Source: Piromyces finnis finn (lineage: Eukaryota > Fungi > Neocallimastigomycota). Taken from it: DNA of 64,000 nucleotides. The notes beneath the pieces were generated by a model, which saw only the letters and a list, made by a program, of their open reading frames with translations, did not search any database and was not told the origin of the DNA. Where the stretch lies: the NCBI GenBank assembly GCA_002104945.1, contig MCFH01000003.1:1364001-1428000 (forward strand), read 5' to 3'. Made by a program: the position numbers and the translations under genes. This document shows, piece after piece, positions 1 to 16,373 of the stretch (the stretch's first letter is position 1; the number at the start of each line of letters is the position of its first letter).

Positions 1-65
1 TAATATTAAAATTATAATTTTAACTATATAATATAATATAAATATTATATTTAAATGATTTGTAG

Positions 66-3000
66 GAAAAAAATGCCAAAAAGAAGAATAAACTTATGCC
101 AATTCTTCTCGGTGTTACAAAAGAATCAATAATAAAAGTTAATCCAGAAACAAAGGAGGTTATTGAAGAATGGAAGTTTAAGACTTTCAAACGTTGGAAT
201 TATAATAGTACATCGTAAGTTGCTTAACTCTATATAATATAATAAAATGAAATTTATTGAAATGATAATATTTTTAAATAATTATAACTAATTTTTAATA
301 CATTATATTAAAAATAGATTTACCATAGATTTTGGTGAAAATAAGGATTCAAACTATGTTGTTGAAACTGATCAAGGAGTGGAAATTGCAAAATTAATTA
401 ATGATTATATTAAACTTTTATTCAAAATGAAAAATAAAACAGAAAAGAAGGAAGAAGTTGAAGAAAAAGAAGAAATAGCACAAGTTACAGAAGAGATTCC
501 AGTCAGTGTAGTAAAAAATAAGATTGAAGTTGAAGTTAAAAAAGAAGTAGTAGTCAATGATTATTTAGATATATTAAATAGCGCTCTTATGTATCTTAAC
601 AAAGCGGAAGAATGTATTATACAATCTGTAGCAAATAATAATAATATTTTTTTGAATAAAACTTATTATCAAAACTTTAAAATCATAAGTTCTAATATTG
701 ATACCACAAATGATAACATTAAAAAGTTAGGACCATTATCTAAGGAGGACGATATTGAAAAAATATGTAATAAAATATTAACAATTGCTAGTTCAATTGA
801 AGAGATAACAACTTTAGTTGTTTTTAATTCATGCTATTTAATAAATAATAATTTAGCTAGAAATCAAAAAGTTAAGGAGAAGGAATCAAGTTTATTAATA
901 AAAAATTATTACTTTAAAGGTGGAAAAGATATTAAAAGCAATTCGCTTTATTTTATTCCAGACGATGAATCAGTATGTAGTTCTGTAAAAAGTAGGGATT
1001 CATTGACTCGTGATGAATTAAGTATTGGATCTTTTGATTCAAAAATAAATGATAATAGTGAAAATATCAAATTTATTGCTGATAAAATATTCTTACCCGA
1101 AGAATATAAAGTAATTACACACACTAAATATATTATAGAATCATTAAAGGAAACTATTATCAATAATAATGATTTACAGCGTTACACAATATTAAGTATT
1201 GATACACGTATTATTGTTGAAGTTTTGAATAAACTTAAAATTAATATATATGAAAATATTCCAGGAAAATCTGATTGTAATAGTTTTATAAAGAAAATTT
1301 CTGAAGTAAAAAACAATTTTACTTTACTACAAGAAAATATTACAAATGAGACTATAGATATTGAAGATAATGATGATGAAGAAACCACCGATAACCAATT
1401 TGAAGAACGTTATATTGATATGATTAATAACATTGAAAAAAGTTCAAATATTGTGTTTGATTTATCAAAAGATAACTATATTTCAATGATATCTTCCATA
1501 AGACAACTTCAGGAACATTTTAATGAGGTAAAATAATTTAAAGATAAAAGTAAATCCTTATTAAAAGGTTAATAAACTTATTAACATTTTCATAATATAT
1601 AAATAATTTATAATATTTTTTGAATTAGATGTATCCATATTCATATAAAGTTTGTGTTAAGGAATATAAAAATATGAAAGCTTCAACATATTTAAAAAAA
1701 TGTACGCTTTTCTTAAATTTGTTTTCATTATATATAAATGATATTAAAAAAATGTACGGTGATTATAAAAATTTAGAAGTCGAAGATCGTGAAGCTTATG
1801 ATAATGCTTATGGTGAACTTCAATCATTAATAGATATGTTGAGAACCATACCAAAACCCGAAATCAAAGAAGAAAAGAAAGAAGTAGAAGAAACATTAAA
1901 CTTCTATAATGATGTATTGGCAGATTCAGATTTAACTAGGTTGAATAAATTGATAGAAATTTTAAATAATTGTCCAGGCTTAAATGATATTCCAAAAAAA
2001 AATATTACTAGTGATATTAAAAATGATATTATGAAGGTAGAAACTTTAGGAAACTTTATGATTATAATGTGTAGCTGTATTAATGATATTTATAAGTTTT
2101 ATTGTGATTTAAAATTACCAATAACTACTAATGAAAATGAAGATGATAATGAAAGTGATAATATGAATGAATGTGGAATTGAATATGATAAAAAAGATAA
2201 AGCTATTCTTTTAGATATTCTAGAAAATATTACTTTTAAATACTCAGATATTACAATAGGACTTTGTGATATTGTATCTAATGTTGAAAATTGCCATAAT
2301 TCTGGTAAGTTATTTGATAATGAAGTTAACCTATATCTTGAAGAAATAAAAAAAGATCTTTTACATATAATGGAAAATGAAAAGAAAATAATTAATAATG
2401 AAGCTAAACATAAAAATATATGGAATAATAATATTGCTTGTGTTGAACAAATTCAATCAATTATATATAATATATTATCCCACTTCTCTAGTATTAAAAA
2501 TGAAAAAAATAGTGTTGCTTATATTATTTATAAAATGAGGTCAATAATTCAAGATATAGAAGATTATATTATATTATCAGATTCATTAAATATTAATTCT
2601 TTCAAAAAAACTAAAGAATTTATTACGGATCATCAAAATAGAATAAAAAAAGAATATGATAACTTATGTAATGGTTTCAAAGAATTAGTAGAATCAAAAC
2701 TATCCGAAAATGGTACATTACCATTAATAATTAAAACAATTCATATATTTGAGTTATATATTATAATGCTTAAAATATCAGTAAGTTTAATGACTTGTTT
2801 AAGTAAAGATCATCAAAAAGAAGTTTTAATAACAGCAAAAACAGCTGCCTTAACTTTAAATGATATTATTATTAATAAATTGGGATTGAATGAAGATGAT
2901 TTATTAGAAATTGCTGTTTATATGGAAGATGATATAGATATTAATAAAATTAATGATAAAATTAACATTTCAGAAAATATTGATGAGGAATTAGTAACTA

Positions 3001-4100
3001 AATTTAATGAACATTTAGTTGACTTGAAGGAAAAAATGAATAGTACATTTGATATTAAATCGATTATAGCATATAATCTTAATTCTTTATATCAGAATAT
3101 TAATGATATTATTGAAGAAACTAAAGTAAAAGAAACCCCAAAATATACTTCAGATGTCGGTGAATGCGAAAACTATTGTAATTTATTTATTCAAAAGGTT
3201 ACTGAAATAAGCACAAATATTTCAGAATGGGATGATTTTAGTAAAGTTCATAAGATATTCCAATTCTTCTACGCATTTAGAGGTTATTCTAATAAAGTTA
3301 ATTCAATTAACACTGAGAATGATATGAACTTATTGGAATCCAAAAAAGAATTACTTAATATTTATAATAAAATTGCTCCAGTTAATATTAAAATGAAGGT
3401 TGACATTATTTCTCTTATTGATGAGGGAAGAAAAATTGAAAGTGTAAAGTGGGAATCTGTTTTAAAAGATATATTAAATATTGCTGCTCAAATGCAAGAA
3501 TTATTAAAAAAATCTAAAGAAAATCAAGTTAGTTTATATACCTCAACAAAGGTTCAGAAATTAAATAGTGTAGAAAAATATTTTGATTGCATTTTTAGAA
3601 ATAACATAAAGGAATTAGATATATTAAATAATAGGGAATTTTATACTGAATGTAATGAAAACATTCTATATTATATAGTATATAATTCATTATATTCAGT
3701 TCATGTGTTTTTCGTTTCATTAATGAGAAAATGCTACGAACTTTTTAAGATGTCATGTAACAGTCCAATGGAAAGTCAAATGTATATGTTTGACGATAAT
3801 TGGTGTGATTTAATTATTAATTCATTTTTAGAAATCAATGATTCAATTAAAAATGTTTCAAATGTTATTCATAAAAACTCTTCTTATGTCAAAAATATTA
3901 ATATTTATAATGCTTTGAAAAAACTTTATGAAACACTTTATGAATTAAACTATTTATCAACTAAGAGATATATAAAAGATAACAATGAAGAATTATATGC
4001 AACTACTGCTGGTGAAAATGCTATAAGAAGTACTGAAGTTGCTATGACTTTTATGGAAGTAGAGAATTCTATACGTAAAAAATTACTTAATATGAATTAC
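66..4100 (+). CDS. Divergent, shortened talin paralog (FERM F3 subdomain, rod, degenerate I/LWEQ); 5' end lies outside the window
   Basis: Exons 66-214, 318-1527 and 1629-~4100 with GT-AG introns, all in frame. They encode EKNAKKKNKLMPILLGVTKESIIKVNPETKEVIEEWKFKTFKRWNYNSTSFTIDFGENKDSNYVVETDQGVEIAKLINDYIKLL, which aligns with the F3 subdomain of the neighbouring talin. The 3' end is uncertain: either a donor at 4101 or read-through to the stop at 4157. Confidence 0.8.
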
Positions 4101-4807
4101 GTATATGTTTTCTATGCTAGTATTATTTTTTATATATTTTATTCTTTATTTATTTAATTAATTAAATAGTTAAATTATATAATTAAAATATTTCTATTTA
4201 TTAATTATGGATTGAATAACGCTATATTTGTACCATTATTTTTATAAAAAAATTAAAAAATAAATTTTTTTTTTTTTTATTTTTTTTATAAAGTGAAAGC
4301 TTTTTTGGTGTAACATTTCAAAAATAGTTTTTTTTATATATATATTTATAATATTTTATAGCATTAAGTTCAGTAACATTATTTATACTATATTTTATTA
4401 TATATAATTCTGTTATTATTAAGTTGCAAGTATATCAAATGATAAAGGCTGATATATTCATATATATAAACCTTCATCATTATATAAAGTTTTAGATTTT
4501 CCAGATTATATTTTTAGAAAATTTTAAAAATTGAAAAAATTTTATTGATTATAAATATAAATAATTAATATATTTTATTTTATAAGTTTATGTTAATTGT
4601 TTTTTAAGATATATATGTATTAATATAGTATTATTTAAAACTATGGAATATTAATATAAAGCATACAATATATAATAATTGTCAATACTACTGAAATAAA
4701 ATATTTAATATTGTGTAAATAAAAGATATTAAATAGATAAAGTTTAAAATCAGATATATATAATATATTATAGTTGCATTATTTTTTGTTATATAATATA
4801 AAAAAAA

Positions 4808-7800
4808 ATGTCACAAATATCAGTAAAAGTGGTGATAATTGATATGAATATCACTAAAACTATATCTGTAAGTTTTCAAAATCAAATCACTTAAGTAGAA
4901 GAATATTTTTCTTTTTTATTATTAATATTTAAAACTATATATTTATAAATATTAGCTTGTTGGAAGCATGACAGTTCAGGAAGTATGCAGAGATATTAGA
5001 GAAAAAAATGGTGAAGTTGCTGGTGGTATTGATCACTCACTATTCTGGCCTGATAATAAGAAATGGCTTGCATTAGGAAGAACATTAGATTTTTATGATA
5101 TAAAAACTGGTGATACATTAGAATTTAAAAAAAAGCATAGAATATTAAAAGTAAGAATGATGGATGATTCTATTAAGACATTTTTAATTGATGAAAGTTT
5201 GCCTGTTAAAAGTATAGTTGAATATGTCGGTCAAAAATTAGGTATTTATTGATTCTTATTTCAAAAATCTAATTCAAAAAAAGCAATGATTAAAACGAGA
5301 AATTAATTTCAACATATATATATATTTTAGGAATTTCAAATATTGAAGAATATTCATTTGCACCAGGAGTTGAACCATCATCACCATTACCAAAAGATAA
5401 AAAAAAAGAAAAAAAAAAGGAAGATGGTTAGTTAATATAAAGAGTATTTAAAACTATTCTAATAAATATATTTATTTATATTTTATAAAATAAATTATAT
5501 AATTTAATGATTCAATAGTTCAATGGTTAAATCCAGCAAAATCACTTATTGAACAAGGAATGGGAGAAAATGATGTTGTTATTTTTAAGAAAAAGTTCTT
5601 CTTTTCAGATCAAAATATTGATAGAAATGATCCAATTCAATTAAATTTACTTTATAACCAAGTTCGTGAATTAATTATTTTGGGAAAATATCCTTGTACA
5701 ATGGAAGAAGCTGCTCAATTAGCAGCTATTCAATGTCAAATCCAATATGGTAACTATGATAGCGAAAAACATAAAGATAAATTTTTCAGGTAATTAAGTT
5801 AATTTATGAAATAAGAAAATTATTTATAAATAGATAATAGATAATTTTGTAATAATTTGTTATTATAATTTACCTTTTTTTCATTATGGAAATTTTCTTT
5901 TATATTTTATAAATAGAATGAATTCAAAAATACATTAATAATAAACAATATTAATAATATTTTAAAATATTAAAACATTTTTCTAAATTAATATAAAAAG
6001 AAATCCAGAAATTGTTCCAAAAGAATATTTTAAAAATAGAAGTGTTGAAAAAATGATTCAACAAGAATATTCAAAACTTAAAGGCTTAAACGAATTAAAT
6101 GCAAAATTCAGATATGTTCAATTAAGTAGATCACTTAAAACTTATGGTGTATCATTTTTCTATGTTATGGTATATAAAAAAATAAATTTATAACATGTTA
6201 TATATAAATATTAATTATTTATATATTAAAAAATTGTATATAATGTTTATATTTACTAAATTTATTAAATTTAAAAATCTAAAAATAAATTAGGAAAAAG
6301 GTGAGAAAAAAAGTAAATATAATATTCCTGTATATTTAGGTGTTACAAAGGAAAGTGTTATTAAATTGGATGTAGAAACCAAAGAAATTAAAAAGAAGTG
6401 GTCTTTAAAGCAGTTAAGAAGATGGGCTGCTACTCCAACTAGGTTATTATTAATATATAAAAAATTTTATAGAACATTATGAATTATATTATTGATTAAA
6501 AAAATAAAATAAAATAAAAATAAAAATGGTGACATTGATTATTGATAATAATATGCTTTTTTATTATAGTTTTACACTTGATTTTGGTGATTATTCAAAT
6601 GCATATTATAATGTTCAGACAAAGGAAGGAGAACAAATATCACAATTAATTTCAGGTTATATTGATATTATTCTTAAGAAGAAAAAAGACGCCGAAAGAA
6701 TGTCAAAAGAAGAAGATGAAGAATATGCTGTCACAGAAGAATATAATGTTGGTGGAAAAGCTAAAGCTCTTACTAATGGTGGTGGAGCTGTTAAAAATTA
6801 TGCTCAAGCTAATCGTGTTAATGGTAATGCCATGAAAATGAAAATGTATGGAAAAGGTATGCTTTCAGTTAATCAACCAAGATTTAATTCAACAAATACA
6901 TCTGTTAGTCCAGAAGTTTATGGTGCTCAACAAGGTATTATTCAAAATATTAATAATGGTTTTGCTACTATTCAGTCTATTCTTGATGATATGGTGAATA
7001 TCAATGAAATACCAGAATTAAGTAATGATGCTTCTGCATTACAATGGAAAAAACAAACTTTGGATGTTAATACTGAAAATATTAGATCTCAAGTTGCTTC
7101 CGACATTTCTGCTTCATGTTCAATTTTAAATCATACAAATTGTGATATGGAAGAAATGGAGTATGATGTAATTGGTGGAGATATTACAACATTATCAGCA
7201 AATATTATTCAATTAGTTCCATCAGCAAAAATGGTTTCTACTTTAGTCGATGACGAGGATAAAAAAAATAAAATATTGGATTGTGCTAAAGAATTAGCAG
7301 ATGCAACAGCAAGATTCTTAGGTAGTGTTCAACCTGTAATTTTGGGACAAGGAAATAAGGAAGAAATGTATCAATGTGCTGATGAAATTGGTAAAACAGC
7401 TTATTCCTTACTTAAAGAATTAGGCATTATTGAAATTGACGATGATAAAATTAGAGATTTACTTGAGGCTGCTAGAGAAATCTCAAATGCTACAACTGAT
7501 TTAACATTAGCTGCTAATAGTGTATCAAATGCATTCCCAAGTTCAGATAAGAAACATGAATTATTAAAAAATGCCAAAATGTGTACTGCTTGTGCTGTTT
7601 CCTTAATCTCAGCTACCACAGTGTCAGCTCCTGGTATCACATCTACTGTTGTATTTGATGAATTTATGGATTCATGTGCATTAATGAAGGATACTGTCAC
7701 TGAAATCCAAAATTCTTCACTTGGTTGTACTGATGAAAATGCATTAAATGGATTGAACCATGCTGCACAAAATGTCAGCGAATGTATTGCTAAGTTAATT

Positions 7801-10800
7801 AATTTAGCTAAATTAATTTCAGATGATTATGATGGTGCTACAGAATTTGATAAAGGTTATGATGCTGTTATTGCTTCATTAGATCAATATATGGATTCAT
7901 TAGGCGATATTGAAGCTATGGTTGAATGTACAAGAGATTGTACATATTGTACTAGACAGTATATTAATATTTTAAAAAATATGGCGGATAATGAAGAAAA
8001 CGATGATAATAAATCAAGATTATATGATGCTATTAAAGGTTTAACTGATGCTACCACAAAGATGATTTTATCAGCAAAGGATTTAACAAAAGATCCAGAT
8101 GATTACGAAAAGCAAATGAATTTAAGAAGAATTTTGGATGAAATTAATGATATTATGATGAGTTCTTCAGATAGTGATAGTTTAAGAACCAGAGCTTTCC
8201 AAAAATTAGCTAAAGCCGCAAGAGAAGTTATTTCATCATGTAATCAATTAACATCAGCTGGTAATATGGCTGCCCCATCTAATAGAAATCAAGCTTCTCA
8301 AATTAGTTTGAATCAGGCAGGAAGACGTGTTGGTGAAATTGCACCAAACTCTATTACTGCAATTAGAGATTACTTAAATGACAGAGAAAATACTCAAAAA
8401 CAATTAGCTTTATTGAATTCTTCTAAACAATTAGTTACTCCATGTAAAAATATGTGTGCTTGTGCTAAGACAGCAGCAGCTACTACTGGTGATGCATCAG
8501 CACAAACACAATTATTACTTGGCGCAAAACACACTGCTGAAGATTTAAGACAGTTACAATTAGCTTTAGAATGTGTAGAAGAAGTTAGTGCTGGTTTAGA
8601 ATTAGAAATGGCTATTGCAATGGTAAAACAACTAGAAGAAGATATTTGCCACGTAAAAGAAAATAGGGGTGAGCTTGTTCCACGTGTTGGTCAAACTATT
8701 GATATGGCACAAATTGAATTATCCTCCTCTGTTAAACCATTATCTAATGCTATCACTCAATTATGTAATTCTGCTTCACAAGGTGCTGAAAAATATACAA
8801 GTAATGCTGCTAGAGATCTAGCTAACTATTTACAAGCTGTTGAAGTATGTTGTAAAAATTTAAGTGCTATTAATGAAAGTGAATTAGCTCAAGACGAAAT
8901 ATTAAATGCTTGTGAGAATGTTCTTGGTGAAGCCACAGTTTATTTAAATGCTTCTTCAGAAGCATTAAATTCAGTTGAGGCAAGAGAAAAAATGTCAGAA
9001 TATGCTCGAAGAATGAATGAAGCCGTTGCCGAATTATTAATGGTTCTTCCGGGTTTGAAAGAACTTGAAAATGCTATTAAAAATATTAGTAACGCATTGT
9101 CCAATTTGGCAAATTCCTACACTCCAAATGGAGACATTTCATATAGAGATGCTCAAATGAACCTCAGTACAGATGCCTCATCTTTGGTAGTAGCTTCTAA
9201 TAATTTAGTTAGTGCAGCAAAATCTAATCCAACTGAATTATATAATGCTGCCTGTAAATTTAACGATACTTTTGAAAAAATTAGTTTGGGCGCTCAAGAC
9301 TTTATTAGTACTTGTGAGGATAAAGCTATTAAAGGAAAAATTGTTGATTTATTAAATGAATTAGGTGAATCTAGTCAAGAACTTTTAAATGCAACAAAAA
9401 TGTATTCCTTAAACACTGCAGATCAAGATTTAAAAGATAAATTATTTGCTGCCACTAAATCTATCAGTGATTCAATTTCAAAGATTTTAGATACTTGTTC
9501 AGCAGATGCCCCAGGACATTCTGAATGTAACCAAGCTTCGCAAATATTGAATGAAGCTTCTGCAAAGATTGAAACTGTTAATGATAATAATGATTGTAAT
9601 TTATCTTACCCAGAAAGTATGTCCTTAGTTACAAATAAATCCAAAACTGTTACTTCTTCTATTACTAATTTAACTGCAGCTTCCCGTGGTGGTAATATTA
9701 AGAAAATTGGTCAGGTTGTTGTTGAATTAGCAGAGGCTATCAAAGAAATTACTGATGGTAATATTCAAGCTGCCTACTTAATTGGTATTGCTGATCCATC
9801 TTCCGTTGCTGCAACTTCTAGAGTTATTAACCAAAACCAATTTATTGAAGGTGTTAATGAAATTAAATCCTCATGTAAGATTTTAACACAAGAGGACTGC
9901 TCTAATGAAGCTATTATGGAGGCTGCTAGTATTATTGCTAAATATACAGCTGCGTTATGTAATACCTCAAAGGAAGCTGGTAAAAAATCTAATATTAGTT
10001 ACAATTCTAAAACAAAATTTTTAAACTCAGCAAGAGAAATTGCTACTTATACAGCTGCTCTTGTCAAGTCTATTAAAGAACTTAGTGCCAATAATAATGA
10101 TGAAACTAGAAAGAATTGTGAAGAAAAATCCAATCATTTAATTGAAACTATTGAAGATTTAGTTGCATTCTCTATGTCACCAGAATTTGCAGGTTCACCT
10201 GCTTACATCAGTCCAATTGGTGAAGCTAATCAAAAACCACTTATAACCTATAACCATAGCTTAATTAATAGTGCTTTAGGTTTGGTATCAGCTTTAAAGG
10301 TTGTTTGTAACAATCCAAAAGATAATTCTGCCATTCAAGTTGTTCAATCTCAAGGTCGTCAAATCAATGAAGCATTAAGAAATTTAATTGCTACATTAAG
10401 TACTAGTGCTCCAGGTATTAAAGAATGTGACCAAGCTATTGAAAGAATTACTGATTTACTTAGTGAACTTGATTCTGCTTTAGTTGAAACAGCTGCAGGT
10501 AAATTAAAACCAAAAGATGTTAATGTTGATGCTCACAATGTACAAAATAGTTTGTTAGATGTTATGAGAGCTCTTTCATCTTTATTTGAAGTTATTGGAA
10601 GAAGTGCAAAAGATAATTCCAGTGAATTAGCATCATCTGTTGCTCAATTATCAGGAAATATGACTCAGGTAAGAAATTTTTATTTTTGCTTTATTATTAA
10701 ATGATTAAATAAATCATACTTAATCATTTTTTTTAAATTTTCTTTTTCTTTTTTAATTACGCATACACACCTTAGGGTGTTAACTCTGCTATTGATATTG

Positions 10801-13217
10801 CAGCTAAAACAAGTGACAGAAGCAATTCGGGTAAGATGCTCGAAGATATTAAAGATATTAATGAAATGCTCTTATCATTCTTGTATTCTTGTAAAGATTC
10901 TGGAGGTGATCCATCCAATACAGAAGCTCACGAAAGAATTGACGCAGATTATGACGCTCTTAATAAATTAATGAAAGATTTTATTACCTCACTTGAAGGT
11001 TCATCTGCTGATGATGAAGATTACTCAAAGAATGTTAAGAAGATTGAAGATCAATTAGCAAACTTATCCAATCATGATACCGGTGAAATTAACGAACAAT
11101 ACCAAGTTTATGCCTCTAATGTTGATGAAAAAGGTAAAGAAATACTTCAAAAGATTGCAGAAATTTTACAAGGAAATGATACTAATAGTGATGAAACGAA
11201 AGCCTACGCTGCTGCTCTTGCTGATATATATGAAACCATTGTTGAAAATGGTAAGAATGCCATTTCTACAACAACCGAAGAAAATATTAAACAATCTATT
11301 GAAGATGATTTACGAGAACTTGGTGGTTCCATTATTAAAACTATTGAAGCAATGAAAATTAATAGAGCTAATAGTAATCAAAATACAAAGGTAAGATTAA
11401 ATATTGCTTCAAAGGATGTCATTAACAACACTTCAAACTTAATCAAGGATGCTAAGGAAGGTTCAAGAGGTTTAACTGTTTGTCAAACTGCTATTGAAAC
11501 CATTGGTGAAGTATGTACTGATTTAGAAGCTGCTATTATTTTTGCTAGTGCTGGTCAGTTAGATCCAATAGATACTAAGGATAACTTCTCATTACATCGT
11601 GAAGATTTATTAAAGGAAGCCAAGAACTTAACTGATATTACCAAAGCCTTTGTTATGGCTGCTGCTACATCCAATACCAATCAAGAAGCATTTGCTCAAA
11701 ATGCATTGAATGCTTCAAAGACTTCTATTTCATTGAAGAATGAAGTTAAGAAAGGTGCTATTTCCATCACCTCTGGTGATAAGCATATGCAAGAACAATT
11801 ATTAGAGGCTGATAAAAACGTTTCTGAAGCTCTTAGTAACTTAATTGCAGAAGCCATGAAGACCTTTGGAAAGAATTTAACTGGTGGTGATGCTTTAGCT
11901 TTAAAGAATGCAGCTGCTGAAGAAGTTAAGGCTTTAATTGAATTGATTCGTATTACTAAGATGGTCGGTAATGAAACTACCCGTGGTGTTAGAGCCCTTG
12001 ATGGTGCTTGTGCTGATATTGATGGTGGTATTATTGTATTAGAATCCGATACTCCAGCCATTGGTACGGCTTTACCTGATGAAGTTGTTATGTTAGCAAA
12101 ATGTGTAGCATCTGCTGCCGGTGCCTTATTTACAACATTTTCTTCTGGTAAGCAAGATGAATTAGTTGCTGCTGCCAATAAGATTAAAACATCTGTATGT
12201 GATATGTTAAGAGCTGGTAAAGCTGCTATTTCTAATGCACCAGAAGATAAGAAGGATCCAATGATTAAGGCTCTTAAAGAAAGTGCTAATGCTAGTAAAG
12301 ATCTCTTAAGCTGTACAAAGGACAATTTAGAAAAAGAAAATGGTGACAATAAGGCTGCTATTATTGAATGTTCCAAATCTATTGCCGCTGCTGTTAATAA
12401 TGTTGTAACTGCTGCTGGTGATTTAATTCCAGGTGGTTACGTTGATCCTAATGATCCAAACGTTATCGCTGAACGTGAATTACTTTCAGCTGCTAATGCT
12501 ATTGAAGCTGCTGCTAAGAAATTGGCTACTCTTAAACCCGTTGAAAGACCTCAAGAAGCTAATGAAAATCTTAACTTTGAAGAACAAATCCTTGAAGCTG
12601 TTAAGGCTATTGCAGCTGCTACTTCTGCATTAGTTAGAGCTGCTACAAATACCCAAAGAGAAATTATTGCTATGGGAAAATTATTACCACAAGAAGATCA
12701 AGTTTATTTCTCAGATGGTACATGGAGTGAAGGTTTAGTTTCAGCTGCTAAACAAGTTTGTGCTTGGACCCATGAACTTTGTGAATCTGCTAATATGGCA
12801 ATTAAGGGTAATGTTCAACCAGAAAGAGTTATTGCTGCATCAAGAAATGTTGCCGCTTCTACAACCCATCTTTTATCTGCTGCTACTGCAAAGGTTGATC
12901 AAAACTCTCAAACTCAAATTCGTCTTAGAGCAGCTGCAAGAGCTGTTACACAAGCCACTGAACAATTAGTAAAGTCTGCCCAAGAAAACATGGCTTTAGA
13001 AGATACCGATGCTTTCACCGAATCATTAAAGGACGGTGTAGCCAACTCTCGTGCTCAAGAATTAGAAGCTCAAATGAACATCTTAAAGATGGAAAAGGAT
13101 TTGGAAAAAGCAAGAAACAAGTTATTATACATCAGAAAAGGTCGTTACCAAAAACAAAATGGTGGTGGTGGCGGTACTATTTCAAAGAGAGGTACTGGAA
13201 TGCTATCTGGAAAATGA
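4808..13217 (+). CDS. TLN: Talin, full length (FERM head F0-F3, Ala-rich helical rod, C-terminal I/LWEQ actin-binding domain and dimerization helix)
   Basis: Exons 4808-4867, 4956-5241, 5331-5426, 5519-5789, 6001-6169, 6294-6442, 6570-10668 and 10776-13217 sum to 7572 nt (2523 aa plus stop) with every junction in frame. Talin motifs: KKFFFSDQNIDRNDPIQLNLLYNQVR, SFTLDFGDY..YYNVQTKEGEQISQLISGYIDIILKKK, ILEAVKAIAAATSALV, WSEGLVSAAK, ELEAQMNILKMEKDLEKARNKL. Confidence 0.97.
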
Positions 13218-14249: not shown

Positions 14250-16373
14250 ATGGAAGACCAAATTAGACAAGCATTTTCACAAGAAAAATTAACAGATGAT
14301 ATAGTAAGACAATTATCAAAATTATGTGAAATATATGAATTATCACCAGAAGAATTAAATGATAACTGGGAAACATATATTATTAAACAAGAAGCTACCG
14401 ATATTAGTATAGAACAAATTGAAGATTTCAAAATTACTGTATTACAAAGATGGGTAGAAGAAGAAAGTAAAAATAAAAAAATAAATACACCTTTCAAGAA
14501 ACAATCTAATACTATGGATATAGACTCTGAAAAAGTTTTCAATGAAAATAGTATTGATAATTTAGATTCTATTATTACAGGAATAACCAAATCAAATAAA
14601 GGAAAATTTCCTTTATTATCACCAAAACGTAATTCAATTAAATCCTCAATTTCAAATACACCTTTCAGCCCAACAAAATATGGAAATATAGAAAAAAAGA
14701 ATGAAATTTCATCACTTACCAAAAAATTCCAAGAAAGAAAAAAAAGAGGAGAATTGGAAGCTGCATTAAATAAAGACATACCAGAACCAACAATTGATTT
14801 TGATATATCAAAAGAAGTTTCTTTAGAATTAATTAATAAGGATCAACAAATTGAATGTTATAGATATATGTTTTCAAAATTGAATGATATTGGAGAAATT
14901 ATGAATAAAAGAATTGATGATATTAGTGAATTAATTTTGAAACATAACAACATTGAATATTTTACACCTCCACAAATAATAAGTTCAGATGAATTTGTTA
15001 CTGCAGGAAGACTTTGTACAGATGATATAGATATTATGGATTCAATAAATACTAAAACAAACGATAGGTCTTATGTTTTAGAAACCAGTCAAAGTACTGG
15101 TTCCGGATATAGAATAAAACTAAACTTTTCACAATTAATAAATGAAGGAAAAGAATATACCATATTCCCAGGTCAAATTGTTGGAGTTAAAGGAACTAAT
15201 TCCACTGGTAATTGTTTAGACGTTACCGAAATTATTGAACCTCCACCACTTCCTATACCAGCCACAAATATTAAAGAACTTTCTCAATACTACGGAAATG
15301 GTAAAGAACAACCTATTTCTGTTTTTGTAGCTTCTGGACCATATACCTGTGAAGATAGTTTAGAATATGAACCTCTGGATGAATTATTTAATAATTATAT
15401 TTTGCCAGAGAAACCAAATGTTTTGATATTGATGGGACCATTTGTTGATGATCGTCATCCATTTATTATGAATGGTGAAACAAAACTTTTACCTGAAGAG
15501 ATTTTCCAAAAGTATATATCCCCACAAATTCAACAATTCTATAAAAGCTCACCTCATTCCACCATTATTCTTATTCCAAGTTTAAATGATCTTCTTTCTG
15601 AGTCCATTTGTTTCCCACAACCACCATTAGATTCTGAAATTACACCTCGAAATGAACAATTTTCTGTTGACGATGAAGCAAGTTATCAACAAAAAATCAT
15701 GGACAATATTCTTAAAAAGCGTAATGCTTTAGGTCTACCAAGTGATTTAGAAAGATTCCACTGTCTCCCAAATCCAGTACAATTTCAAATTAATGATGTC
15801 ATTTTTGCTATCAGCAATAATGATATTATATCCCATATGTATAATGAAGAATTCTATCGTCCAGCTCGTTCCTCTGGATTAGGTTCACCATTTAAAGGTA
15901 GTGTGAAATCCAATCATCGTCCAATGGATAGAATTTCACGATTAACCAGGCATTTACTTCAACAACACAGTCTCTATCCACTCTTTCCATCAGCAATAGA
16001 TGAAGCCAATATTAATTATGAACATGCTAAAGGTTTTTATCTTAATATAAAACCAGATATTTTAATTTTAAATAGTGCTGTTCGACTTTTTGCAAAGAAT
16101 GTTGATGATGTTATTTGTGTTAATCCAGGTCAAGTTGTTCATAAAGTCACTGGTACTTTTTCAAAATTTTATATATACCCAAAGGATCTTACCAGTTATA
16201 TGAAAGAAGTAAAAAAAGAAGAAGAATTAACTAACTTCAAAATGGAAGAAGATGAAGGATTAACCAAGGTAAAAATGGAAGAAGATGATGATCAACATAA
16301 TATGGAAGTTGATCAAATAAATATTTTTAATGATGTTTCAAAGAGATGTCGTGTTGAAATTCGAAGAGTCTAA
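14250..16373 (+). CDS. POL12: DNA polymerase alpha/primase subunit B
   Basis: Single 707-aa ORF. N-terminal LSKLCEIYELSPEELNDNW, OB-fold motif YTIFPGQIVGVKGTN, and calcineurin-like phosphoesterase motifs VASGPYT, LILMGPFVD, IILIPSLND, PNPVQFQINDV, KPDILIL, VNPG. Confidence 0.95.
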   Translation: MEDQIRQAFSQEKLTDDIVRQLSKLCEIYELSPEELNDNWETYIIKQEATDISIEQIEDFKITVLQRWVEEESKNKKINTPFKKQSNTMDIDSEKVFNENSIDNLDSIITGITKSNKGKFPLLSPKRNSIKSSISNTPFSPTKYGNIEKKNEISSLTKKFQERKKRGELEAALNKDIPEPTIDFDISKEVSLELINKDQQIECYRYMFSKLNDIGEIMNKRIDDISELILKHNNIEYFTPPQIISSDEFVTAGRLCTDDIDIMDSINTKTNDRSYVLETSQSTGSGYRIKLNFSQLINEGKEYTIFPGQIVGVKGTNSTGNCLDVTEIIEPPPLPIPATNIKELSQYYGNGKEQPISVFVASGPYTCEDSLEYEPLDELFNNYILPEKPNVLILMGPFVDDRHPFIMNGETKLLPEEIFQKYISPQIQQFYKSSPHSTIILIPSLNDLLSESICFPQPPLDSEITPRNEQFSVDDEASYQQKIMDNILKKRNALGLPSDLERFHCLPNPVQFQINDVIFAISNNDIISHMYNEEFYRPARSSGLGSPFKGSVKSNHRPMDRISRLTRHLLQQHSLYPLFPSAIDEANINYEHAKGFYLNIKPDILILNSAVRLFAKNVDDVICVNPGQVVHKVTGTFSKFYIYPKDLTSYMKEVKKEEELTNFKMEEDEGLTKVKMEEDDDQHNMEVDQINIFNDVSKRCRVEIRRV

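Follow-up and report, generated by a model that had tools for sequence, protein, structure and literature searches.

The stretch of Piromyces finnis DNA analysed here, to which we refer as the window (64,000 nucleotides (nt); assembly GCA_002104945.1, contig MCFH01000003.1, positions 1,364,001 to 1,428,000 of the forward strand), is extremely AT-rich, matches P. finnis scaffold MCFH01000003.1 without a difference over 10,898 bases and opens within a gene that lies on the + strand and immediately precedes the canonical talin gene. A first-pass annotation made from the sequence had described this gene as a 'mini-talin', a shortened and fast-evolving tandem paralog of talin, and the locus therefore raises the questions of whether mini-talin is a genuine talin duplicate, which parts of talin it has kept, and how the encoded protein might work. 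We find that mini-talin arose long ago from talin by tandem duplication at the DNA level, that the full gene in P. finnis has seven exons and encodes 1596 amino acids (aa), and that the rod bundles R1-R6 were deleted from it within one large exon. Our best overall reading, which blends a functional paralog of this kind with a tail-anchored adaptor, is in our judgement a probable one.

Following a proposal in the first-pass annotation to retrieve upstream sequence and complete the head, a complete talin-type F0-F3 head was found upstream of the window. Exact spliced mapping of the GenBank model for P. finnis yielded exons 1-5 of 63, 289, 382, 169 and 149 nt, which match the seven-exon structure of the models of Anaeromyces robustus and Neocallimastix californiae, where the same seven exons measure 63-66, 289, 379-385, 169, 146-149, 1216-1222 and 2520-2529 nt. 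Exons 6 and 7 were taken from the window (1210 and 2526 nt), and with them the P. finnis protein comprises 1596 aa, with 1295 codons inside the window, from exon 66-214 to the stop. The junction between the last two exons (1527/1629) is backed by an intronless contig (L005, encoding P0004) and by the annotated models P0005 and P0006. The gene had previously been taken to end at 4100, on a GTATAT splice donor, and here the annotation needs correction: the open reading frame (ORF) reaches a stop at 4155-4157, and its last 18 codons are conserved in six orthologs. A splice donor at 4100 is ruled out, as all orthologs and two GenBank models read on into the hydrophobic tail.

Evidence for duplication comes from the exon-intron structure. 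As first noticed, exon 66-214 of mini-talin and exon 6294-6442 of talin are alike, both being 149 nt long and running from phase 0 to phase 2, and their products are homologous parts of the F3/PTB lobe (47% identity over 49 aa, E = 7e-15), both of which match the Pfam IRS-type PTB domain. The similarity extends in both directions, with the next exon carrying on the F3 lobe in both genes (FTIDFG.. in mini-talin, FTLDFG.. in talin; E = 8e-09) and the preceding exon measuring 169 nt, phase 2 to 0, in both. Because the preceding exons are also of the same length and the seven-exon structure recurs in three genera, the matching exon pair is not a chance agreement. Altogether, six intron positions are common to mini-talin and talin, namely introns 1 and 2, the three that flank the 169- and 149-nt exons, and a phase-0 intron deep in the rod. 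Intron 1 follows 21 codons in mini-talin and 20 in talin, the exon before intron 2 measures 289 and 286 nt, respectively, and at the deep rod intron the BLAST alignment stops exactly at the exon ends of both genes. In the F1 loop, canonical talin carries an additional intron (5427-5518), such that its exons 5331-5426 and 5519-5789 together correspond to the single 382-nt exon of mini-talin. The common intron positions, together with the talin-type head, bear out the proposal that the gene is a tandem talin paralog.

The head domains are assigned by Pfam in the proteins P0005, P0006 and P0007, all of which carry FERM_f0 (F0), RA_2 (F1), FERM_M (F2) and IRS (F3). When head residues 150-400, from the end of F1 to F3, were compared with the PDB, talin-1 was matched at E ~1e-60, followed by kindlin-2 at 1e-21 and myosin VII at 1e-12. 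Alignment to talin-1 heads in the PDB revealed that P. finnis mini-talin retains the equivalents of talin-1 K256, K272, K274, R277, K316, K322, K324, L325, K357, R358 and W359. Judged from these alignments, the talin-type F0-F3 head is complete and includes both the predicted basic membrane-binding residues and the R358/W359-type peptide-binding residues.

In contrast to the thirteen 4- or 5-helix bundles (R1-R13) of a talin rod, mini-talin has the C-terminal part of the rod only. The first-pass annotation had counted about 1277 codons in mini-talin and 2230 in talin from the common exon onward; the full count is 1295 versus 2232 (149 + 4108 + 2439 nt for talin), a difference of 937 codons. 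Its estimate that roughly 950 aa of the rod are gone agrees with our counts, by which about 930-970 aa are missing. The loss falls on the large exon, which measures 1210 nt in mini-talin and 4108 nt in talin and is thus 966 codons shorter, whereas the last exons are near-equal with 842 and 813 codons. Four anchors tie what remains to the talin rod. In exon 6, aa 87-288 align with residues 987-1180 of the talin large-exon product (BLASTP E = 2e-08) and aa 263-403 with residues 1229-1366 of the same product (BLASTP E = 6e-04); in exon 7, aa 299-416 align with talin last-exon residues 219-339 (hhalign E = 1-2e-04) and aa 661-736 with residues 561-641, the start of I/LWEQ, where a Trp is conserved (BLASTP E = 2e-04). 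The anchors are colinear with the talin order and preserve its spacing, and hhalign on rod-only columns recovers those of exon 6 as well. Shuffled sequences reached 19.3 ± 1.8 bits (maximum 25.8) for exon 6 and 20.6 ± 1.8 bits (maximum 26.9) for exon 7, as compared with 43.5 and 31.2 bits for the real sequences, and off-register cross-comparisons (exon 7 with the talin large exon, the exon-6 rod with the talin last exon) gave E = 0.18 at best. The P. finnis talin piece aligns with human talin-1 at an offset of +377, which places the two exon-6 anchors at human residues 1364-1557 and 1606-1743; by the established bundle boundaries of talin-1, the first corresponds to R7 and R8 and the second to the latter half of R7 and the beginning of R9. 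The anchors of exon 7 fall on R11 and on the R12/R13 junction. In mini-talin, F3 is thus followed by a linker of about 35 aa and then directly by R7/R8, and R9-R10 (exon-7 aa 1-290) are assigned by position only.

Structure prediction points in the same direction for the C-terminal bundles. The AlphaFold2 (AF2) model of exon 7 is all-helical with about 28 helices, and its predicted local distance difference test score (pLDDT) runs from 60 to 90 over aa 295-635. Foldseek comparison of this model with the PDB gave talin-1 first (6r9t, 1.7e-05, and 8vdq), then talin R11R12 (3dyj, 8e-04) and then Sla2 REND-THATCH. With VIA-align, the model at 293-630 superimposed on talin 1975-2291 (R11R12; 9qn7_B, Z = 18.2; 3dyj_A, Z = 17.3), HIP1R THATCH (1r0d) matched model 640-812 at Z = 15.8 with a root-mean-square deviation (rmsd) of 3.4 over 171 residues, and talin R13 (2jsw) matched at Z = 14.0 with an rmsd of 3.5 over 167 residues, values that have to be set against the Z of about 13-14 that helical bundles reach by chance, the best values here being higher. 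On full-length talin, model 295-810 aligned with 1974-2475 over 451 residues. A search of 48,161 chains that did not depend on Foldseek ranked 3dyj_A first, and its top eleven matches were all talin rod or THATCH domains; vinculin and catenin were also among the fold matches, ranked below the talin bundles. The fold matches follow the correct order R11-R12-R13, at positions that agree with the independent sequence anchors. The R13-like bundle matches THATCH/R13 by fold, has no Pfam I_LWEQ match and has a model pLDDT of 40-78. Since the start of the rod aligns with R7/R8, and the last exon with R11-R13 by both sequence and fold, the missing block is R1-R6.

Within the R7/R8-like region lies a Ser-rich stretch (window 846-1059, exon-6 aa 177-247) that AF2 predicts to be unstructured, yet it contains the motifs SLLIKNYYFKG, SLY.IPD, RDD.S.RSF and KIFLPE.YK, which are invariant or nearly so across genera. 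Because a conserved stretch is here predicted to be unstructured, R8 is possibly degenerate, and the stretch may be what is left of it, converted to a linear-motif or phosphorylation loop. A classical Ala-rich vinculin-binding consensus is unlikely to occur in the mini-talin rod, judging from its Ala content of 2.4% and the absence of a match to the Pfam vinculin-binding site (VBS) models.

How old is the duplication, and where else is mini-talin found? A word search retrieved orthologs of the last exon at 51-70% identity, as well as P0004, a protein of 959 aa in which a complete talin-type head precedes exon 6 and a portion of exon 7. Mini-talin and talin follow each other in this order, and on the same strand, in P. 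finnis, A. robustus, N. californiae (two assemblies) and one metagenomic relative. Upstream, a RING-finger (zf-C3HC4_3) gene is the neighbour in P. finnis, N. californiae and metagenomic contigs, and a UBA_HYPK gene is present in all loci except that of N. californiae. Further upstream, all loci except that of A. robustus contain a Nudix/CCCH/W2 fusion gene or its W2 part. Because gene order and neighbours are conserved across them, the duplication is older than the divergence of Piromyces, Anaeromyces and Neocallimastix. In a tree of the F2F3 region, mini-talins form a clade with support of 100/100 and a stem of 0.71, which lies among the fungal talins and not with the animal-type group; its exact attachment point is not resolved by the tree. 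Exon-6 orthologs (n = 5) have a mean column identity of 77%, and exon-7 orthologs are 51-71% identical. Searched against 1.84 billion representatives, the exon-7 profile found its own clade and one spurious repeat protein, and a feature search of the ESM Atlas gave no usable match. Going by these searches, mini-talin is seen only in the sampled anaerobic gut fungi (Neocallimastigomycota, three genera).

The description of mini-talin as fast-evolving is borne out by substitution rates, since for the same species pair (the window versus L001) its nonsynonymous rate (dN) is 3.5-4 times that of talin. In this comparison mini-talin has a dN of 0.138-0.175 and a ratio of nonsynonymous to synonymous rates (dN/dS, NG86 method) of 0.19-0.23, and talin has a dN of 0.041-0.048 and a dN/dS of 0.07-0.085. 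Overall, the NG86 ratios of mini-talin range from 0.19 to 0.40 and are lower by maximum likelihood (ML); we quote NG86 ratios and compare dN because the ML dS values of mini-talin (2.6-17) are saturated. The first-pass annotation had named a dN/dS near 1 as a sign of a pseudogene; at about 0.2, the ratio indicates purifying selection instead, and intact mini-talin ORFs of the same length occur in at least seven species or contigs. The pseudogene reading is ruled out by these ratios and by the intact orthologs, and by these sequence measures mini-talin is not a pseudogene. The reported composition shift is also confirmed, with Ala at 2.4% versus 12.5% in talin, Ile, Asn, Tyr and Lys all raised, and FYMINK residues at 45.8% versus 27.7%. 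GC content at third codon positions (GC3) is 0.14 in mini-talin and 0.16 in talin, while at codon positions 1 and 2 it is 0.265 versus 0.422 (window 1-4157 versus 6570-13217). Because GC3 is about equal in the two paralogs, the shift reflects amino-acid choice and not loss of coding. The faster copy has drifted toward amino acids with AT-rich codons and has kept its helical pattern.

Transcription is supported by contig L005 (3.3 kb), which has a 143-nt leader (5' untranslated region) followed by an uninterrupted frame over the head, exon 6 and part of exon 7. As this frame crosses all six intron positions that are present in every genomic locus, the contig must derive from spliced RNA of a related fungus. 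Its end (2996-3309) consists of unrelated, more GC-rich sequence after ..DKKDKVILFD and looks like a chimeric join, so that the last eight residues and the stop of P0004 are artefacts. Taken together, the sequence data make it very likely that mini-talin is a conserved, functional talin paralog that lacks R1-R6.

At the C-terminus, P. finnis mini-talin reads ..KKLLNMN-YVYVFYASIIFYIFYSLFI, and in all orthologs the final 19-20 residues are without a charged or amidated side chain. In six orthologs the Kyte-Doolittle means over 19 residues are 1.72-1.97, and the segment is followed by one residue at most. The tail is conserved in length and character, each ortholog ending in it to within one codon, and AF2 predicts a helix at exon-7 aa 822-841. 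Elsewhere in the rod, 21.5% of residues are Lys or Asn, so the tail is not a read-through of AT-rich non-coding DNA. It comes straight after the R13-like bundle, in the place of talin's amphipathic dimerisation helix, and it does not have the properties of such a helix; a hydrophobic stretch of about 20 residues that lies within about 30 residues of the C-terminus and leaves almost nothing on the luminal side is the pattern of a tail anchor. The N-terminus of the protein is the ubiquitin-like F0 lobe. A second hydrophobic helix, at exon-7 aa 363-391 within the R11-like bundle, also exceeds the threshold; Lys and Glu are among its residues. We read the tail as a probable tail-anchor transmembrane segment that replaces the dimerisation helix.

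In animal talin, actin binding by R13 depends on the dimerisation helix. We propose that in mini-talin the C-terminus would be inserted into a membrane after translation and that the R13-like bundle would thereby be held at that membrane surface, with the membrane anchor taking over the role of the dimerisation helix. With its roughly seven bundles, the rod would serve as a protein-binding spacer that is possibly force-responsive, and the FERM head would dock on acidic phospholipids, an NPxY-like tail or both. The outcome would be a membrane-anchored talin-type adaptor, or a tether from membrane to membrane or from membrane to cortex. That mini-talin works as a tail-anchored adaptor or tether is, from its sequence, about evenly balanced, and its mechanics may be altered with respect to talin. 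More tentatively, and with somewhat less than even chances, mini-talin could be a self-anchored mechanical linker with its tail in one membrane (endoplasmic reticulum, hydrogenosome or plasma membrane) and its head gripping another membrane or a receptor, the anchor replacing both dimerisation and actin binding.

Among the other explanations, the one that survives best takes mini-talin for a soluble talin-like adaptor that would act as a short talin does and connect actin, by way of a dimerised R13, with a membrane partner; the hydrophobic C-terminal helix would then be an oligomerisation helix inherited from talin's dimerisation helix, or an element that binds lipid droplets or a membrane surface. 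The position of the tail, straight after the R13-like bundle, and its preference for Tyr and Phe over Leu, Val or Ala would fit such a protein. However, segments of 19-20 residues that lack charged and amidated side chains, as found at the end of every ortholog, are typical of tail anchors, and the dimerisation helix of canonical talin is amphipathic and charged, unlike the mini-talin tail; we regard a soluble adaptor as unlikely.

Several observations weigh against the tail-anchored paralog that we favour. No Pfam talin-rod or I_LWEQ model matches the mini-talin rod even at E = 1 (in a search up to E = 10), and an ortholog-profile search of PDB sequences found talin at the F3 end only and nothing for exon 7. 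The single rod anchors are modest (E = 1e-04 to 2e-08) and the AF2 models are of low confidence, the mean pLDDT being 45 in exon 6 and 56 in exon 7. The exon-6 model is too poor for a fold search, so that R7/R8 is placed by its sequence anchors, and R7-R10 as a whole are without fold support; the chance level of the Z scores given above belongs here as well. In one ortholog, that of N. californiae, Asn replaces the R358 equivalent. The evidence for spliced RNA comes from a related fungus and not from P. finnis, whose own GenBank model is fragmented, and the putative transmembrane nature of the tail is read from hydropathy, its single line of evidence. The points on the rod could suggest that only the head derives from talin and that the 1200-aa helical region is lineage-specific or stems from a vinculin/alpha-catenin-like family: rod profiles find no talin among PDB sequences or in Pfam and nothing outside the clade in the 1.84 billion representatives, and vinculin and catenin appear among the fold matches. 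This is nevertheless very improbable in view of the four anchors, which stand in talin order with their spacing kept and with negative off-register controls, of the rod intron common to both genes at an aligned position and phase together with the near-equal last exons (842 versus 813 codons), and of the talin bundles outranking vinculin and catenin in the correct order R11-R12-R13. A decaying duplicate, that is a pseudogene or a copy under relaxed drift with an AT-rich composition due to mutational erosion, we consider scarcely credible, for although its coding GC of 0.22 is close to background and the FYMINK shift, the 3.5-4-fold rate, the rod that Pfam does not recognise and the fragmented P. 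finnis annotation could all be taken that way, three genera and several metagenomic species have intact ORFs of equal length and identical seven-exon structure, dN/dS is low by both methods, one contig represents a spliced transcript, key residues of the head are conserved, and GC3 equals that of talin, so that the shift is one of amino-acid choice.

Features of the mini-talin locus (positions in the window unless stated otherwise)
Feature	Position	Strand	Remarks
Mini-talin exons 1-4 (F0, F1, F2)	40-1251 nt upstream of window start		
Mini-talin exon 5 of 7, first part of F3/PTB lobe	66..214	+	AG at 64-65, GT at 215-216; Pfam IRS 1.3e-09
Mini-talin intron, phase 2	215..317	+	GT..AG; position as talin intron 6443-6569; TC/A = Ser, then FTIDFG; exact spliced mapping agrees
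Mini-talin exon 6: end of F3 (aa 1-45), short acidic/Lys-rich linker, helical region aligning with talin R7/R8 and R9 start	318..1527	+	
Spurious 37-nt 'intron' of the GenBank P. finnis model	820..856 (L010 12072-12108)	+	Frame shift truncates the model to 531 aa
Mini-talin intron, phase 0	1528..1628	+	GAG/GTAAAA ... TTAG/ATG; aligns with talin intron 10678-10775
Mini-talin exon 7 (last), 842 codons + stop, all-helical	1629..4157	+	In-order alignment with talin last exon 10776-13217 (813 codons)
R11-R12-like pair of five-helix bundles	2499..3518	+	Exon-7 aa 291-630; fold match and hhalign
R13/THATCH (I/LWEQ)-like five-helix bundle	3537..4064	+	Exon-7 aa 637-812; fold match and BLASTP anchor
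C-terminal uncharged hydrophobic helix, candidate tail anchor	4095..4154	+	Hydropathy, ortholog conservation, AF2 helix
Canonical talin, parent-type paralog, 8 exons, GenBank model of 2523 aa	4808..13217	+	Pfam domains, exon borders, annotation

The canonical talin downstream matches Pfam FERM_f0, FERM_M, IRS, Talin_middle, VBS2, R4, VBS, IBS2B, TLN1-like_RS and I_LWEQ. The GenBank model of P. finnis mini-talin (BCR36DRAFT_276122) has 531 aa, contains exon 66-214 and stops early. Its protein (P0007) leaves the ORF of the window and all orthologs after ..IEEITTLV, and because the orthologs read straight through 820-856 in frame, the annotated intron is spurious. The end of exon 7 (window 3781-4154; L010 about 15032-15403) belongs to another model, of 124 aa, and about 940 mini-talin codons between the two models are without annotation in P. 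finnis. Full-length orthologs are in GenBank for A. robustus (BCR32DRAFT_268891, 1600 aa) and N. californiae (LY90DRAFT_642358, 1597 aa), and the mini-talins of all three fungi are named hypothetical or FERM domain-containing protein. A practical gain is that the split P. finnis annotation can now be corrected to a seven-exon gene of 1596 aa.

How does mini-talin compare with known proteins? With talins at large (animal TLN1/TLN2, fungal and amoebozoan talins) it has in common the F0-F3 head, the IRS-type PTB lobe, the basic and R/W residues and, by fold, an R13/THATCH-like last bundle, and with the neighbouring P. finnis talin also the exon-intron layout; it differs from talin in lacking R1-R6 and a Pfam-detectable rod or I/LWEQ domain, in being poor in Ala and in carrying a hydrophobic tail in place of the dimerisation helix. 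TLNRD1 (PDB 6xz4), a natural derivative of the talin R7R8 module, matches both the talin R7-R9 piece and our exon-7 model, but it is a stand-alone R7R8-like protein without a FERM head, R9-R13 or a membrane tail. In mechanobiology, the name mini-talin is given to engineered constructs with rod deletions, which consist of the talin head and a truncated rod with the C-terminal bundles still in place. These laboratory constructs retain the dimerisation helix and the actin-binding site, whereas the gut-fungal gene is natural and conserved and ends in a hydrophobic tail. Sla2/HIP1R has a C-terminal THATCH (I/LWEQ) five-helix bundle, which the mini-talin model matches by fold, but combines it with an ANTH head and a coiled coil and has no FERM head, talin rod or membrane tail. 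Kindlins (FERMT1-3) possess a talin-like FERM head with an F0 lobe; they differ by a PH insert in F2 and the lack of a rod, and the mini-talin head matches talin far better (1e-60 versus 1e-21).

Literature searches for talin paralogs in chytrids and for tail-anchored talin returned nothing relevant, and the sole paper found on talin in an anaerobic fungus (PMC5042518) reports one talin, vinculin, paxillin and alpha-actinin and no integrin in Orpinomyces C1A, with no mention of a talin paralog or of a FERM domain. The first-pass statement that no such paralog pair had been described in fungi thus stands insofar as we found no paper describing one, but the proteins themselves were already in GenBank, as hypothetical proteins.

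What follows for the talin family? Talin is known from textbooks as the force sensor that connects integrins with actin, and laboratory work has removed its rod bundles singly to learn which of them are needed. Gut fungi retain a natural deletion of R1-R6 over the whole history of at least three genera, which makes mini-talin a natural experiment on which talin modules work alone, and a handle on the partners of the talin head in fungi that are reported to lack integrins. If mini-talin is indeed a self-anchored linker, it would be a membrane tether that nature has made out of the unfoldable bundles of talin.

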